A DNA stretch of 63,383 nt, the filler included, from Dimorphilus gyrociliatus (lineage: Eukaryota; Animalia; Annelida), in NCBI GenBank assembly GCA_904063045.1. It is 7 parts of 7 records of this genome, joined end to end, with 100 filler letters (N's around TTAATTAATTAA, not from the genome) between each part and the next. Parts side by side here need not be neighbours in the genome. Positions count along the whole stretch, not along the records: positions 46,281 to 55,050 come from CAJFCJ010000295.1; 6 more parts are not named here. One strand, 5' to 3'. The notes under the pieces were generated by a model, which worked only from the letters and a program-made list of their open reading frames with translations, ran no database searches and was not told where the DNA came from. The translations under genes were made by a program, and so were the position numbers. Every line of letters starts with the position of its first letter. Positions within the stretch are counted from its first letter, which is position 1. Positions 46,281 to 55,050 of the stretch are shown here, piece by piece.

Positions 46281-49027
46281 ATGCAAACTAACAGGAGAAT
46301 TAGCAAGTCCAAGTCGGCCTTTTTTCAAAATAACAAAATATGAAGTAACCTTAAATGATAGATATAATTGAAATTATTTTGTATGATTTCATTTAAAATT
46401 TCAGGAAATACATGATAGCATATGTCCAATGATAAATCAGCATTTACATCAAGTTGATAATGTAGTTTTAGATAATTGTAAATGGGATAATACAGCATTA
46501 TGGGGATGTGAAATATTTGATATAAGCTATGAAAATGTTTACATAGCTAGACCACAATGTGTAAAAAACAAAAATTTAAAAAGTACAGATAAAATTTAAA
46601 TTTAAAAAAAAAGAATTTTTGTTTTTAAAAAACAAAATTTTTCAGATTTAAATTTAAGGTTACATTATCATAATTCAACATTATATTATACAAAGAATAA
46701 ACAAACACAATTCAAATTTACTGGAGTATTTCAAGTGTTTTATAACAGTTTTTGGTATAATGTAAGGTTAATAGATTTAAGATATTTAGAAGTTACAGCA
46801 ATTTGTAAATATTTTGGTTTTTGGAGTGGAACAATGACACAATTGCCACAACATATAAATTTAGGAACAAGGGAATTCTTTTCATTCAAATGTAATGGAA
46901 CATCATTAAAAAATAATTGTACAATTTCTCTTTTTCCACAACCAAAATTTTTTTTCAAGTATAAAATTTTTTTACTATTCAAATTTTTTTTTCACATTCA
47001 ATACAATATCATTTTACTATAGAAATGAATATGTTAAAAAGCGAATACGTGTAATACCAAATTTTGGAATTGAATGTAAAAGATCTTATGTTTTAGGTGT
47101 TTTATAACATTTTTTTAAAAGTTTTACAAAAAAAATTTTGCCAATAAAGAGAATTTTCAGATTGTAAATTGAATAGTTTAGCATACATGTTCGACGGAGC
47201 TTGTTATTATCTCATTTCAGAGAAAACATCATTTTCAATCAAGGATTCTTCTCAGATATGTAAAAAAAGAAATATCACTTTACCCAGTTACCTTTCCAGA
47301 GAAGCTGTTTATTTGTTAAAGTTGAATAAACAATTTGAATTTATTACTAGTAATGGGGAAAATCTTGAAGAAAATACAAAATTTAGATCTTCTTTACCAA
47401 CAAGTAATTACAAAATTGTATTCAATTTGTATAAAATTTAATTTCAAAGTTTTTTAATTTAAAGTTTTGAAGACTGCAAAAGATATTAAAGGTAGAAAGT
47501 TTCTAACTTTTGATGACAGTAAACCCTTTGAATTAAAATACACTCAACTACTGAAAGATTATGAGTATATTCAATACAATAATAATGTTTGTTTAGTAAA
47601 TAATTTCACTAAAACTATTTATTTTGGCAGTAAAATTGATGATTGCTTTACATATCTTTCCAAATTATCAACATCATATATAACCAGAAGAGATAAATGT
47701 TTCCGAGTTGAGTTTGATAGTAAAGCGGCAGATTCAACTGTTTTTAAGACATTCAATTGTGATGTTCAATATTTCTATAATGTTTTTTGTTTTCAATTTG
47801 AAAGTTGCTAAACAACTTTTAAATATTTAAATTTATGTTTTTCATTACAAAAAAAACTTTTTTTTTTTTTTTCAGAAATTGATAAATTAAATTTGAATAT
47901 TCATAAAGAACTAAATACCAATACAATACTGTTCACTTGTCCAAATAATTCATTCTTTTGTAAAATTGACAATCTATGTATTAATATAATTTATGTCTGT
48001 GATGGAATAAATGATTGTATTTCTGGTGAAGATGAACAGCAAAACTGCCAACAATTTTTTAAATTCTCTTGTACAAATAACTTACAAATAAATTATCAAT
48101 TTGTTTGTGATTTTGTTCAAGATTGTCCAAATGGAAATGATGAGAAATTTTGTGGTAAGCATTCAAATATTTCTGTGAAGTAGAAATCTGAATTTTTTAA
48201 AAATTATAGAATGGAATGAATGTAATCAAAATTCCCAAATTAGATGTAAAAACTCTCAGTGTATTGATAGAAATTTGTTTTGCGATAATGAAAGGAATTG
48301 CTATGATTCAAGTGATGAAAATTGTTTAACCTACATTTCATCTAAAGGCAAAAAAGAAGGTTTTTGTGTATGTTTTTCTCTTTTTTTTTAAAAAAACTAA
48401 TTTTTTTTTGTAAATTATGCAGAATGTCGTAAAGAATTTCAATTTTTTTGTGATAATAAATGCATACCTAATCATTTGGTTTGCAATTTTCAATTAAATT
48501 GTGAAAGTGAAGTTGATGAAGAATCTTCAGCTTGTTTTCATAAATATAAATATTTGAACAACATGAAATGTTCAATTTTTGAAATAGAAATGTTATTTAA
48601 AACAATGCCTTGTAAACTAGAGTATAATTCAATGGGTCATATTTTGACTAAAGTTCATTATCCATTCTCCAAGTTAAAATATTGTAATGTCAAGAAATGT
48701 CAATTTGGAGAATATCTATGTAAAAAACAGTCTTATTGTATATCAATTGAATTAGTTTGTGATGGAATTGTCCATTGTACTCATTCAGATGATGAACAAA
48801 ATTGTGGTAAAATTTTTACCTAGATTGTTAAATTTTTTAAAAATTTATTTCCAAAAAAAAATTGAGCAGATTACTTCAAACCAAAAGGATATTTTAAATG
48901 TAGAGATGATAAATCTTACATTACAATCAACAAAATATGTGATGGAATTGTTAATTGTCGAAAAGGAAGCGATGAAATGTATTGTAATGTTTCATTTAAA
49001 TGTCCAACTAATTGCCAGTGTTTATTG
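46281..49027 (+). pseudogene. Multi-exon extracellular protein gene (lectin-like exon, ~6 LDLa repeats, start of LRRNT) interrupted by an LTR element
   Basis: C..I....VCDG..DC..G.DE..C repeats at 47938-48990 followed by CPTNCQC immediately before the LTR. Confidence 0.7.
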
Positions 49028-49662
49028 TGTACAACTTTGGTTATATTTTACATGCTTGAACTCTATTATTTTATGCAACATATACATGTACATCTTAAAA
49101 CCTACGCAAGAAAATGCTATAACATTGGCCAAACATAAGTCTGATTAGTCAGCTTGAAGGCTCATCTTTAATTACCAATAAAGGTTTGGCCAAGTTATAA
49201 TTTAATTAACTTGCCTAGGGTGTGGCCAAGTTATAATTCAATTAACCTTCCTAAATGTTGAACCTTGTAACATCCTGTTACTAAAGATAAATATGAACTA
49301 CACATTTCGGCAACTGTAAAGTGATGATTGGATGTCAGAGACAAACCTCAAAGTATATAAATCCTCATTATTCTCATTTGGCATGCAGCTTCCATCTGGA
49401 CCCAAGGACCTGGGAAAATCATCTGGAAACAACCTCCACTGGAACCATCCATCTACTCCTCAACATTGGAAGACAGTTTGGTAATTTGGCAACCTGCTAT
49501 TACAAACTATCTACTCTGCTATTGAACTCTCATATTGTTACTTGCTTAAGTATTATTATTGCGAATAAACCATTTTAATTTAAACATTTGTTTAAAGGTT
49601 CGAGTAGAACCAGTATTGTTATAACTTGCAAACGCATAGATTTTGCCAGCAAGAGCAGTACA
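49028..49662 (+). repeat. 5' LTR (635 bp)
   Basis: Starts TGTAC, ends GTACA; near-identical to 60897-61504. Confidence 0.9.
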
Positions 49663-49666
49663 AATT

Positions 49667-49684
49667 TGGCGCAGTCGACAGGAT
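49667..49684 (+). promoter_or_regulatory. Primer-binding site, probably tRNA-Ser
   Basis: TGGCGCAGTCGACAGGAT 4 nt after the LTR; its reverse complement ATCCTGTCGACTGCGCCA fits the 3' end of metazoan tRNA-Ser from recalled sequence. Confidence 0.75.
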
Positions 49685-49722
49685 ATTCTTTTGGTTTATT
49701 CAAAAGTTTTGAGAAAGTAAAT

Positions 49723-52700
49723 ATGGCAGAAGGAGGAAATGGAAACGCCACTGGGGCAGTTACAGACTCTAACCCTTCAACCCCAGCAACTCCAACAATT
49801 ACAATTCAGCCAGCAGGAATGTCAGAAAGGCAACAAAGACTAATTGAAGACTATGACAGATTGGTGAGTGAAATGAAAAGAAATCGAATCACAATTCCAA
49901 CAGATCATGGAGATGGAACACATCACCCAGCACAGAACCCAAATGTTGATATCACAACAGTAATTCAAGCATTAAGGGCTGCTTGGGACCGCCCTCAAAG
50001 AACTATTCTCAAGTTGTATGATGGAAGCAAGGAGTGTTCAAAATTCAAAGAAGACTTTAATCAGGCATGTTATGCTTATGGTTGGATAGGAGAAGATGTT
50101 GTGAAAGCAAATCTTTTAGATTATTTAACTGGTCCTGCAAAGGATTTGGTGTTGGCTCTGGATGGAGAGCCTACTGTGGAGGAAATATGGAAAGCCCTCC
50201 ATGACGAATTTGATCTAGATCCTTTGGAGTATCAGGAGAAATTGCTTAACTTAAAGCAAATGAATGGCGAAAGTGTGGTTCAGTTTGTTAATAGAGCAAA
50301 GAAATTGATAAAGAGGTTTTCTCCACCTAGACCAATGGAACCACAATTGCTTGCAACTATGAAAGAAATAAAACTGATGGAAGTTTTACAAAGAGGATTA
50401 CAACAGGATATTCTACATTTAGTGTACACCTTACATCCTAAATGTCAAACATTGGCAGAACTATATGAGGCTGCTAAGCAAGCAGAAACTTCATTAAAAC
50501 TAACTCAAAGAAAACCGATCACAATGGTGTCAAAATTGGAAACTCAACAAAGAAAAGAGACCAAAAAGACCCAGGTAATCAGAAAAGATGCTTCTACAGA
50601 AACCCCAAATTTCTGGAATAGAAAGCATGTACCTGACAACAAAAATGCTACTAAAGAAAAGTTTTCAAGCCAAAAAGTCCAAAAGTATGCACCAACTACA
50701 ACAAATAGGTATTATAAGAAAAATCAACCAGCAAAGACGATACTGAAAGAGGAACCTAAGCTACAAAAATTAGAAACATTAGACAATGAAAGCATGTCAG
50801 AAAACGACGAAGTTCAAGATATTCTCTGTTTTTCAGATAGTGACGAATCCACTTGTCAGCTGTTACAAAGCAAACAATCTGAGCGAAATGCTTCAACATT
50901 TATTGGACAATTTGAAACTAATACTGGTTTTAAGTTTGATGCCTTGATAGACTCTGGTAGTGACAGATCTTTCATTTCAAAAAAGGTATTAAGACAAGTT
51001 CAAGGAAAAGCATCCTTCCCAGAACAAACTGTGAAAAATGCTAGAGATGCTTCAGGAAATAGCATCGAGATATGTGGAGAAATCATTCTCAGACTTTATT
51101 TTAATGAAAAGATTATTAAACAACGCTTTCTGATCAACAAAATCATTACACAACAATGTATTATTGGGTGTGACTTTCTACAACAAAATGGAGCTACCCT
51201 TGACTTTGGCAAGAGACAGATTATACTCCAGCCAGGTACAGAAAAGAATTACCCTGTTGGAACACAACACTTATCTTTCAAAGGGTTTTACCCAGTTCCT
51301 CTTATTATGAAAAAGAATGAGAGTCAAATACATACCCTTCAGACAACAATTGAACAAGAAAATCCCGAGATGAAGAACAAAGTTACCCAAATTCTGGCAA
51401 AATATAAAGAAACTATTGCAGAAGACAGATTTGATATTGGCAATCCAGAGGTACCACCCTTGGAAATAACTCTTGAACCAGGTTCAACACCATATAGACA
51501 AAGGCCATATAGAATGCCTCCTCAAAAACAAGAAGAATGTAAGCAACAGATAGCTGAATTGGTAAAAAGCAAAGTTATTCAACCAAGCAAGAGCAATTGG
51601 GCTTCACCAATTGTTTTCGTAAGAAAGAAGGAAGGTAGTCTACGAATGTGTGTAGATTATAGAAAACTAAACAAAATGACAGTTAAAAACAAGTATCCAC
51701 TGCCAAATCAAGATGATCTTTTTGACCATTTGGGAGGAGGAAATAAATTCTTTTCTACAATGGATTTGACAAGTGCATACCACCACATTAACATCAAGAA
51801 AGAAGATAGGTCTAAAACAGCATTTATTACACCTTTTGGCTTGTTTGAATTTATTAAGATGCCTTTTGGATTAACCAATGCCCTCCTCATTTTAGTTATG
51901 TAATGAATTCATTTGTGCTAAAGGATGTAAAGCATTTGTGCCTAAACTACCTTGATGACATAATAATATTTACCAAGTCGCTGGACCAACATTGGGAAGC
52001 ATTGGAGACCATTCTTCAACAGATTCAAAAGTACAATTTTAAGATTAAACTAAGTAAATGTGTGTTTTTGAAAGAACAAGTTCAATTCTTGGGACACATT
52101 GTATCAGAAAAGGGGATTGAAACAGATAAGTCCAAGACAGATAAATTATATAATTTACAGCCACCAGTGTTTGCAAATTCACTACTAAGCTTTGTTGCAT
52201 TTTGTGGCTATTACAGAAAATTTATACAAGATTTTGCAAGAGTAGCTAAACCTCTGTATATGTTAATGAAACTACATGGGAAAAAGGATAAATTGCAATG
52301 GACTGAGGAAGCCAAGCAATCATTTTTCAAGTTGAGAGATGCAGTAGTTAACCCTCCTGTATTACAACTACCTGATTTTGCTAAAGATTTTCACTTAACA
52401 ACAGATGCATCGAATGTAGCTGTAGGAGGAGTTCTTGAACAAGTTTATGTAGATGAGAATGGGAAGAAAACAATGAAACCCATTGCCTACGCTTCAAAAC
52501 AATTCAACAATAATCAAATGAAATATGCAGCCTATCAAAAGGAAGCATTTGGGGTTTACTGGGTTGTAAAGAAATTTTTACATTACCTTCAAGACAAGCC
52601 ATTCTTTTTATATACTGACCATCAGAGTCTAGTACAAACATTTAAGCAAACAAATTGAATGTCAGCACAGCAAAATGGGTCATGGCTTTAATGGATTTAA

Positions 52701-54651
52701 AATTTACAATTAACTATGTGACAGGACGAAAAAATAGAGCAGATGCATTAACAAGATTAGAAGAATATACACCCCAAGGAAAGTAACATTTGAAGAGCTA
52801 ATTCATGGAAAGATCAAAAAGGAGAATTCTCCCTCTATTTCAGTTAAAATGGAACAGTATGAACATACACCAGAGTTAACTTTTGTAGCTACCAGTGATA
52901 ACAGTGAAGAGAAAATTGATTTGTCTTCTGTTGACTTACAGTCAGAGCAAGAAAAAGATGTGAATTTAAAATCAATTAAAGAATATTTAACATTGGATGG
53001 TCAGCTACCTATTCCTTATTTTGGAACTTTTACACCTTTCATAATGGAGATGTTTGTTCACAAGGAAATGATCTGGATTATCCTTGAAGAAAGAAACATT
53101 CTGGTTTTACCTGACCATTTGATGCTAACTCTGCTCCCTAAATTCCATAAAAATAAAATTCACAATCACCATGGACCCGAATGACATTACAAATAATTAC
53201 AAAGACCTTTTGGCACCAAAATTAAAGATTATGATTGAGAATTCAATAAAGGATTGCACTTTGTGTGAACAAATGAATGGTAGGAGTAGAGTATACCCTT
53301 TGGTAGAAACCTTTCACCCTGCATCACCAATGGAGTTGGTAGCCATGGATATAATGGGACCCTTACCCATGGTTAAGTCATACAGATTCATACTTGTGAT
53401 AGTGGATCATTTCAGTAGATACACAGTTTTATATGCACTCAAACAGCAAACCAGTAAAGAAATTGCAAACCTTCTTTTCAACAGATTTTTTCCCATTTTT
53501 GGAATTCCAAAACAAATGTTGACAGATCAAGGAAGAAACTTTGTTGGTAAAGCTTTTAAAGAGTTTATGAAGGTATTAGGTATTGAGAAAATCCAAACAA
53601 CAGCTTATAGAAGCCAGAGCAATGGACTAGTTGAACGAAGAAATAGAGAAGTGAGGAAGGAAATCAATAAATTAGTGGTGGAAGAAAATCAGCATAACTG
53701 GGTTGCAAACCTACCCTTGATTCAAGCATTTTTGAATCAATCACCTGTAGGAAGTACAAGACTACCACCCAGGAACTTCTTTTTGGCACCAGCACAAGAA
53801 CACTGATTGATGTAACAATGCATACTACCTCTCCTGAAACAAATGTACTATTTGTATTCAATCACCAGCAGCAATTAGTACAGTTAAGAGCTACAGCCTT
53901 CTGTAAATCCATCATGGCAAAAGAACAATATAGGGAAAGAAAGAATAGAAATCTCAATCTTCCAAAATTTTTGAGGTTGATGATGAAGTATTCTTAAGAA
54001 ATGATGCTGCAAGAATTGCAATAACAAAAATCCCTTCTTTAAAATGGTTAGGCCCATACCGAATAACAAAAGTCAATCATCAAAAGTGGATATATGAAAT
54101 CAAATGGATGATAATACATGCAAGTTGGTACATGGTAGCAGATTAAGACTAGCCAATGAATCTAATAAGTTGGAAACAGGGAAAGAAGCAACAACAATCT
54201 TTCACCTTGTGGAGAAGGAAATAACACACCTCCAATATCTTTCTCAGGTAGAAGGAAGAAATGACTTCCAATTCCGTTTGAAGAATCAAAAAGGCCAAGA
54301 AGTCATTGCCTTGTGTGACACAGGAGCATTGAGATCCTTTATTACTGAAAAAGAAATCAAGTTAATGGATGTTACAATTATGGATAAAGAAACAATTGGC
54401 TTACCAATTATAACTTCAGCTGATGGGAAAGCTTTAAAGCAAAAAGGAAGCGTAAAGCTGAATATCCAATTTGCTGGAGAAAGTATGGAACAAGAATTTA
54501 TAGTTATGGAAAACTAGACATAGCAATAATACTTGGTTGTGATTTCCTACAAACTGTGGGAGCAAACCTCAATTTTGAAGCTAAACAGTGTTCTCTCAAA
54601 TTTGATAGAAGGAAAGGGAACCTGGCTGAAAGAATAAGGCAACCTCAATAA
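49723..54651 (+). CDS. Gag-Pol (Gag, PR, RT, RNase H, IN with GPY/F, second PR) with several 1-nt frameshifts
   Basis: LIDSGS (50950), RMCVDYRKLN, KMPFGL, YLDD, TDAS..AVGGVL, TDHQSL, H..H..C..C, DIMGP, TDQG.NF, ERRNR, WLGPY (~54045), LCDTGA (54317), ILGCDFL. Confidence 0.88.
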
Positions 54652-55050
54652 ACAAAGTCACTATAGCCATGATGGGACAGCATGACTCTTCATCAGAAAG
54701 TTCAGATAGTGATGACTCAGAGATGGAAGTTACTAATTCTGATACTGGTTATGACACAAGCAATACTTTCAAAACAGACAGTAATTACAGTCTCAATGAA
54801 CCTTCAAGCTCATCTGAAAGTGATGACACAGAAACAAATAATGAACTGGATCAAAATACAGATTCAGAGGCAAACATTATCTCTGATAGAGAAGATGAAA
54901 TATCTAGTTCAGACGATGAGTCAATAATTATTGAAAGGAAATTATTGATATAACCCATTCGGATAATGAGTCAATAATTATTGAAGGTGATTATTGACAT
55001 ATCATTCAGATAATGAGTCCTCATGTGGTTGCATCATCCAAGATGAGAAA

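Follow-up and report, generated by a model that had tools for sequence, protein, structure and literature searches.

A second retropepsin domain downstream of the integrase in a decayed Ty3/gypsy-type element of Dimorphilus gyrociliatus

The proteases of retroelements are homodimeric enzymes that become active when the polyprotein dimerises; to our knowledge, they are single-copy. Modules that are known to follow the integrase (IN) are the chromodomain, dUTPase (in some retroviruses), env, and esterase and exonuclease ORFs, as far as covered by the relevant sections of two publications (PMC13524379, PMC5408684). The main and most abundant LTR family of the D. gyrociliatus genome is Dingle (Dinophilidae gypsy-like elements), a new Ty3/gypsy family in which, according to the sections of Martin-Duran et al. 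(2020, PMC7854359) that deal with it, the integrase is followed by an env of the herpesvirus gB-like kind. Dgyr_Errantivirus_1 has a chromodomain after the integrase, according to the part of a survey of env-carrying gypsy elements (PMC13524379) in which it is described. A second protease is not mentioned in the passages on D. gyrociliatus elements in PMC7854359 and PMC13524379, and a word search of the open-access literature for retrotransposons in which the protease is duplicated or occurs a second time brought up no such report. In the initial annotation of the present locus, the layout PR-RT-RH-IN-PR (protease, reverse transcriptase, RNase H, integrase, protease) was noted as not known to have been described.

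The element reported here lies in a 63,383-nt stretch of D. gyrociliatus DNA (the window; seven parts joined end to end, filler letters included), within the part at positions 46281-55050 (CAJFCJ010000295.1, hereafter the piece). It resembles Dingle in its host genome, in its Ty3/gypsy-type gag-PR-RT-RH-IN organisation and in having coding sequence beyond the integrase; it differs in that Dingle carries a gB-like env after the integrase, whereas here a second retropepsin-like domain (PR2) and an acidic region follow, the comparison being with the published description of Dingle. With the chromoviruses and Dgyr_Errantivirus_1 it shares the presence of an additional module at the C-terminal end of Pol, immediately behind the integrase. 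Their module is a chromodomain, whereas the one observed here is a retropepsin, and the chromodomain that would be expected of a chromovirus was not matched by Pfam in the post-integrase frames searched. The LTR retrotransposons Vesta, Juno and TelKA of bdelloid rotifers (PMC5408684) are comparable in that they have gained extra enzymatic modules, which are shared among element lineages; their modules, however, are a GDSL esterase, a DEDDy exonuclease, a dUTPase and env, none of which duplicates a protease already present in the element. Regarding the domain itself, PR2 is similar to the canonical retropepsin (peptidase family A2) in its DTG preceded by hydrophobic residues, its Gly-containing flap region, its hydrophobic-hydrophobic-Gly motif and its length of ~110-130 residues, but the canonical enzyme is present as a single copy before RT, whereas PR2 follows the integrase as a second copy in the same polyprotein. 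The coordinates of all features are summarized in Table 1.

Table 1. Position of the element and of its features along the window, with the observations on which each assignment is based
Feature	Position	Strand	Basis and remarks
Ty3/gypsy-type element	~49266 to piece edge (55050)	+	Order gag, PR1, RT, RNase H, IN, then PR2
Inferred 5' LTR	49266-49662	+	TGT...ACA ends; GC rise from ~0.25 to ~0.37; limits inferred
PBS-like site	49667-49684	+	Starts TGGCGC, TGGCGCAGTCGACAGGAT; read directly; 4 nt past the ACA of the LTR
gag	49723-50880	+	Identity to P0001; weak PNMA/gag-like Pfam match
PR1, canonical retropepsin	50911-51240	+	DSG 50950-50958; IIGCDF 51160-51177
RT and RNase H	51460-52685	+	Two frames, break near 51900; Pfam RVT_1, RT_RNaseH_2, RT_RNaseH; tblastn with P0003-P0005
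IN, N-terminal region and catalytic core	52738-53803	+	Two frames; Pfam rve, E 5.9e-14
IN, C-terminal region	53760-54160	+	Three frames; ELLFG-type, GPY (WLGPYRI) and VH..L motifs; ends KLVHGSRLRL
PR2, second retropepsin-like domain	54218-54618	+	DTG 54317-54325; ILGCDFLQ 54529-54552; Pfam, BLASTP, hhalign, ESM Atlas, relatives P0008 and P0007
Frame break inside PR2	54510-54516	+	Stop 54515-54517 in the incoming frame; adjoins a short A run
Stop codon closing the PR2 frame	54649-54651	+	Read directly
Acidic Ser/Asp-rich coding region	54669-55050	+	Three frames to the piece edge; ORF 54669-54953; 50-nt repeats; start KVTIAMMGQ matches KITVAMMRQ of P0008

The upstream limit of the element is marked by a change in base composition, from an AT-rich host flank (GC 0.22-0.29 over positions 46281 to ~49200) to a GC content of 0.33-0.40, which sets in at ~49270 and is kept up to the edge at 55050. 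A second copy of the putative 5' LTR was absent up to 55050 in a repeat comparison within the piece, and the 3' end of the element lies beyond the piece edge. The PBS-like site resembles what we take to be the complement of the 3' end of tRNA-Ser. Transfer RNA-Ser is listed among the primers of env-carrying gypsy elements in the relevant part of the survey cited above (PMC13524379).

Along the + strand the Pol domains follow one another in the order PR-RT-RH-IN, as determined with Pfam and by tblastn of gypsy Pol proteins, which is the order of the Ty3/gypsy group (Metaviridae). A 771-aa open frame (49588-51900) comprises gag, PR1 and the first half of RT, and the canonical protease that had initially been noted before RT was thus found in one frame with its neighbours on both sides. 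Pfam models RVP, RVP_2 and gag-asp_proteas match PR1 at residues 447-552 of this frame, with a score that itself falls under the gathering threshold (19.4 vs 20.7). The remainder of RT and the RNase H are read in a second frame (51858-52655). Two gypsy Pols, P0003 and P0004, match the integrase in tblastn at 53216-53689, and the C-terminal region of the integrase is collinear with the C-termini of the same two unrelated proteins. This C-terminus reads F.V.DEVFL...KWLGPYRI...YEI in frame 0 (53949-54143); a frame break follows, after which DDNTCKLVHGSRLRL is found in the open frame 54098-54514.

Regarding gag, the identity to P0001, an NCBI gene model from D. gyrociliatus, is 98% over 205 aa, and that to P0002 (D. 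gyrociliatus model DgyrCDS14905) is 74-81%. P0002 is a chimeric model that spans nested or adjacent transposons: in it, the end of a Dingle-like gag and a partly deleted PR1 are joined to FLYWCH and MULE transposase domains. The element family is probably the published Dingle group of D. gyrociliatus, to which it is likened via the description given in the paper. A word search with the 771-aa frame yielded nothing beyond two chimeric models from D. gyrociliatus and some distant gypsy Pols, and one with residues 1-230 of P0002 among proteins of 676-2150 aa returned only P0002 itself. An intact Pol of this family is thus missing from the protein databases, so that a lack of IN-PR2 proteins there is uninformative.

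The closing motif of the integrase (KLVHGSRLRL) and the catalytic DTG of PR2 are carried together by the open frame 54098-54514, in which the second retropepsin comes 40 residues after the motif; a linker of ~20 residues between the integrase and PR2 belongs entirely to the same frame. The frame of VHGSRLRL therefore does run on into a second retropepsin, as had been claimed, and the sequence features named in the initial annotation (WLGPYRI, VHGSRLRL, DTG, SADG and the C-terminal motif) were all located where it had placed them. In its N-terminal half, PR2 begins with a hydrophobic strand region, which is followed by ALCDTGALRSFI (ALCDTGA) and by the flap-like ITSADGKALKQKG with ITSADGK. Beyond the frame break the domain continues with IILGCDFLQTVGANLNF (54526-54576), which is part of the longer KLDIAIILGCDFLQTVGANLNF. 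The C-terminal motif IILGCDFLQ (54526-54552) stands ~70 residues past the DTG, the spacing of a retropepsin, and is aligned with IIGCDFLQ of PR1; the DTG, together with the hydrophobic residues before it, aligns with the DSG of PR1, again as in a retropepsin. The description of PR2 as a complete second protease is thus correct regarding the extent of the domain, which is full, but not regarding its reading frame, which is broken inside the domain at ~54510-54516. The layout PR-RT-RH-IN-PR is real in this copy, given the domain order obtained with Pfam and tblastn and the presence of the integrase end and PR2 in one frame.

For the determination of its identity to PR1 and for the hhalign comparison, PR2 was read through with an X at the frame break. 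Alignment of PR2 and two relatives with PR1 by hhalign yielded a probability of 97.8% and an E-value of 6.5e-13 over 104 columns, the alignment spanning from before the catalytic Asp to past the C-terminal motif. The identity of PR2 to PR1 over these 104 columns is 31%, compared with 17-25% for the proteases of three further gypsy elements. Among the proteases compared, the motif I[IL]GCDFLQ..GA.L.F is common only to this element lineage. In BLASTP searches of the two pieces of PR2 against the gag-PR1 frame, both gave collinear matches to PR1, with E 0.002 for the piece with the DTG and E 3e-6 for the piece with the C-terminal motif. All ten of the ten nearest named clusters in the ESM Atlas are retropepsin families. 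The Pfam check that had been proposed for PR2 gave a mixed result: the N-terminal piece matched Asp_protease_2 (E 0.004) and gag-asp_proteas (E 0.009), but both matches are below the gathering score (18.2 vs 24.3 bits and 17.0 vs 28.2, respectively), because the frame break splits the domain. The C-terminal piece alone gave no Pfam match, and a sequence search of the PDB gave no hit. The structure predicted for the N-terminal piece with AlphaFold2, from an alignment of two rows, reached a mean pLDDT of 38, and all forks were weak in a tree of seven protease domains.

The Pfam scores below the gathering threshold are what speaks for a chance likeness of PR2 to a protease. Against it stand the collinear alignments with PR1, which take in both catalytic motifs (the hhalign and the C-terminal BLASTP E-values given above), and the fact that two database relatives also match retropepsin models; chance resemblance is excluded by these alignments. 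At the level of sequence, PR2 is confirmed as a retropepsin that is homologous to PR1 across the whole domain, and as a diverged paralogue that is broken in this copy; the hhalign result and the identity of ~30% bear out the view, taken in the initial annotation, of a divergent paralogue with an intact DTG. A repeat comparison within the piece detected no DNA-level repeat between PR2 and PR1, which therefore represent neither a recent duplication nor a collapsed assembly of the same element.

A HMMER scan of a 139-aa piece of PR2 against 1.84 billion representative proteins yielded five matches, two of which (P0007 and P0008) are real. (The other three, P0006, P0009 and P0010, are repetitive, unrelated proteins and were rejected as spurious.) Neither a word search of proteins of 76-243 aa, with the PR2 piece as the query, nor a scan of JGI metagenome contigs and IMG/VR added further relatives. 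P0008 is the D. gyrociliatus gene model DgyrCDS14462; it begins within PR2, is 66-67% identical to PR2 of the window, is matched by Pfam RVP_2 (E 0.005) and reads unbroken through the point equivalent to the frame break seen here. It remains collinear for ~30 residues past PR2 (KITVAMMRQ, compared with KVTIAMMGQ in the window). This shows that PR2, along with the sequence after it, is present at a second, clearly diverged locus of D. gyrociliatus, which P0008 covers from within PR2 onwards. In the P0008 model, a PR2 remnant is joined to a TIR-domain protein (residues 1-83 and 282-402), and the chimeric model is either an artefact of gene prediction or a fragment of a transposon that has been exonised. 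P0007 is a 656-aa protein from an ENA assembly with a gag-like part that is 25% identical to gag of the window and, at the usual distance after it, a protease that is 42-44% identical to PR2 and 29-31% to PR1. The nearest outside relative of PR2 is thus an ordinary post-gag protease of a sister element, in keeping with PR2 having originated by capture or duplication inside this group of elements.

With a probability of roughly 0.6, the locus is read as a decayed, Dingle-like Ty3/gypsy copy of errantivirus type in which PR2 is a true part of the lineage, a second retropepsin added to Pol and spread by retrotransposition. According to this main reading, the pol frame would have gained a second, complete retropepsin domain beyond the integrase. 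This domain would be an old paralogue that originated inside the element lineage, either when the element's protease was duplicated or when that of a sister element was captured in the course of reverse transcription. The domain would then have been carried by retrotransposition into at least two diverged genomic copies. That the layout with PR2 after the integrase is family-wide appears likely, on the indirect evidence that the junction is clean and in frame at the domain level, that PR2 recurs at a second, diverged locus and that no RT follows it.

The position of the P0007 protease, in the ordinary place after gag, also fits capture by recombination, which may have been a dead end. PR2 would then be a functionless rearrangement, in which non-homologous template switching, or a deletion, fused the integrase end of this element to the protease region of a different, P0007-type Dingle-like element, leaving a defective chimera whose spread, if any, needed other copies. 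The closer similarity of PR2 to the protease of P0007 than to its own PR1 (42-44% vs ~31%) is in line with such an event, as are the concentration of frame breaks in the 3' third of the element (~7 in 1300 nt, compared with none in the first 2300 nt) and the silence on a second protease in the cited passages of the published descriptions of D. gyrociliatus elements. The junction, however, is clean at the domain level, with a complete integrase followed by a complete in-frame protease that has its N-terminal strand and no remnant of gag; a simple swap would also have brought an RT along, and none follows PR2. Moreover, PR2 has stayed open at the second locus in spite of divergence to 66-67% identity, and the sequence that follows is shared as well. 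The chimera, the main rival of the preferred reading, is considered somewhat unlikely; if PR2 were such a recombination scar, the copy would represent an ordinary defective element.

A nested second element, of which PR2 would be the start, and a mis-join of two elements during assembly had been named beforehand as findings that would overturn the interpretation, and both are judged very unlikely. Repeats are hard to assemble, part of the frame breaks at this locus may be assembly errors, and the break in PR2 adjoins a short A run. On the other hand, the stretch from the integrase to PR2, a linker within one open frame, contains neither an LTR nor a PBS or gag, and BLAST-type comparison with gypsy Pols detected no similarity to RT downstream of PR2 up to 55050, which argues against both a nested element and a mis-join. 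The identity of PR2 to PR1 of only ~30% is not that of a collapsed copy of the same element, and P0008 has the same PR2 with the same ~30 residues of downstream sequence at another locus. An old recombination event would still be compatible with these observations.

In intact members of the family, the preferred reading of PR2 as a lineage-specific addition to Pol would imply that the domain is translated as the C-terminal part of Pol and functions as a protease, whether it homodimerises or pairs with PR1; its catalytic signatures have all been retained. The likeliest role of PR2 would be to cut the extra C-terminal part of the polyprotein, namely the acidic region after PR2. The functions suggested in the initial annotation, namely heterodimer formation, processing of a downstream ORF or cleavage of host defence proteins, are speculative. 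The stronger claim, that PR2 is an active second protease throughout the family, so that each Gag-Pol with the layout PR-RT-RH-IN-PR would contain two different retropepsin monomers, appears unlikely. If it held, the monomers might pair inside one polyprotein or across two, or PR2 might be specialised for freeing the C-terminal acidic protein or what a downstream ORF encodes, and the element would represent a natural intermediate between homodimeric retropepsins and two-lobed aspartic proteases. A lineage with two diverged protease monomers per polyprotein would, if true, provide a natural experiment both on the regulation of the enzyme and on how two-lobed aspartic proteases arise by duplication, and the protease would join the short list of post-integrase modules.

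The acidic region matches no Pfam family, and an env was not seen in the ~400 nt between PR2 and the piece edge. A unit of 47-50 nt is present in ~2.5 copies at 54896-55020 and encodes a repeated [S/H]SD[D/N]ES-IIIE peptide. Successive copies of the unit are read in different frames, from which it follows that the acidic region is frame-broken, too.

The copy at ~49266-55050 has at least seven frame breaks in pol and is therefore dead (non-functional). Their density over positions 49588-55050 is uneven, with none in the first 2300 nt (gag-PR1-RT), 3-4 in the next 1900 nt and ~7 in the last 1300 nt. Some of the breaks might be errors of long-read assembly rather than mutations; the break in PR2 adjoins a short homopolymer.

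On the upstream side, LDL-receptor class A repeats are encoded on the + strand at 47893-48823 by short exon-like ORFs (Pfam Ldl_recept_a, E 6e-15 and 1e-6), and the DNA around these exons has a GC content of 22-25%. The element is positioned either just downstream of a gene with LDL-receptor class A repeats or inside this gene. A 35-nt unit occurs twice in tandem at 49183-49253 (89% identical) and adjoins the start of the putative LTR on its upstream side.
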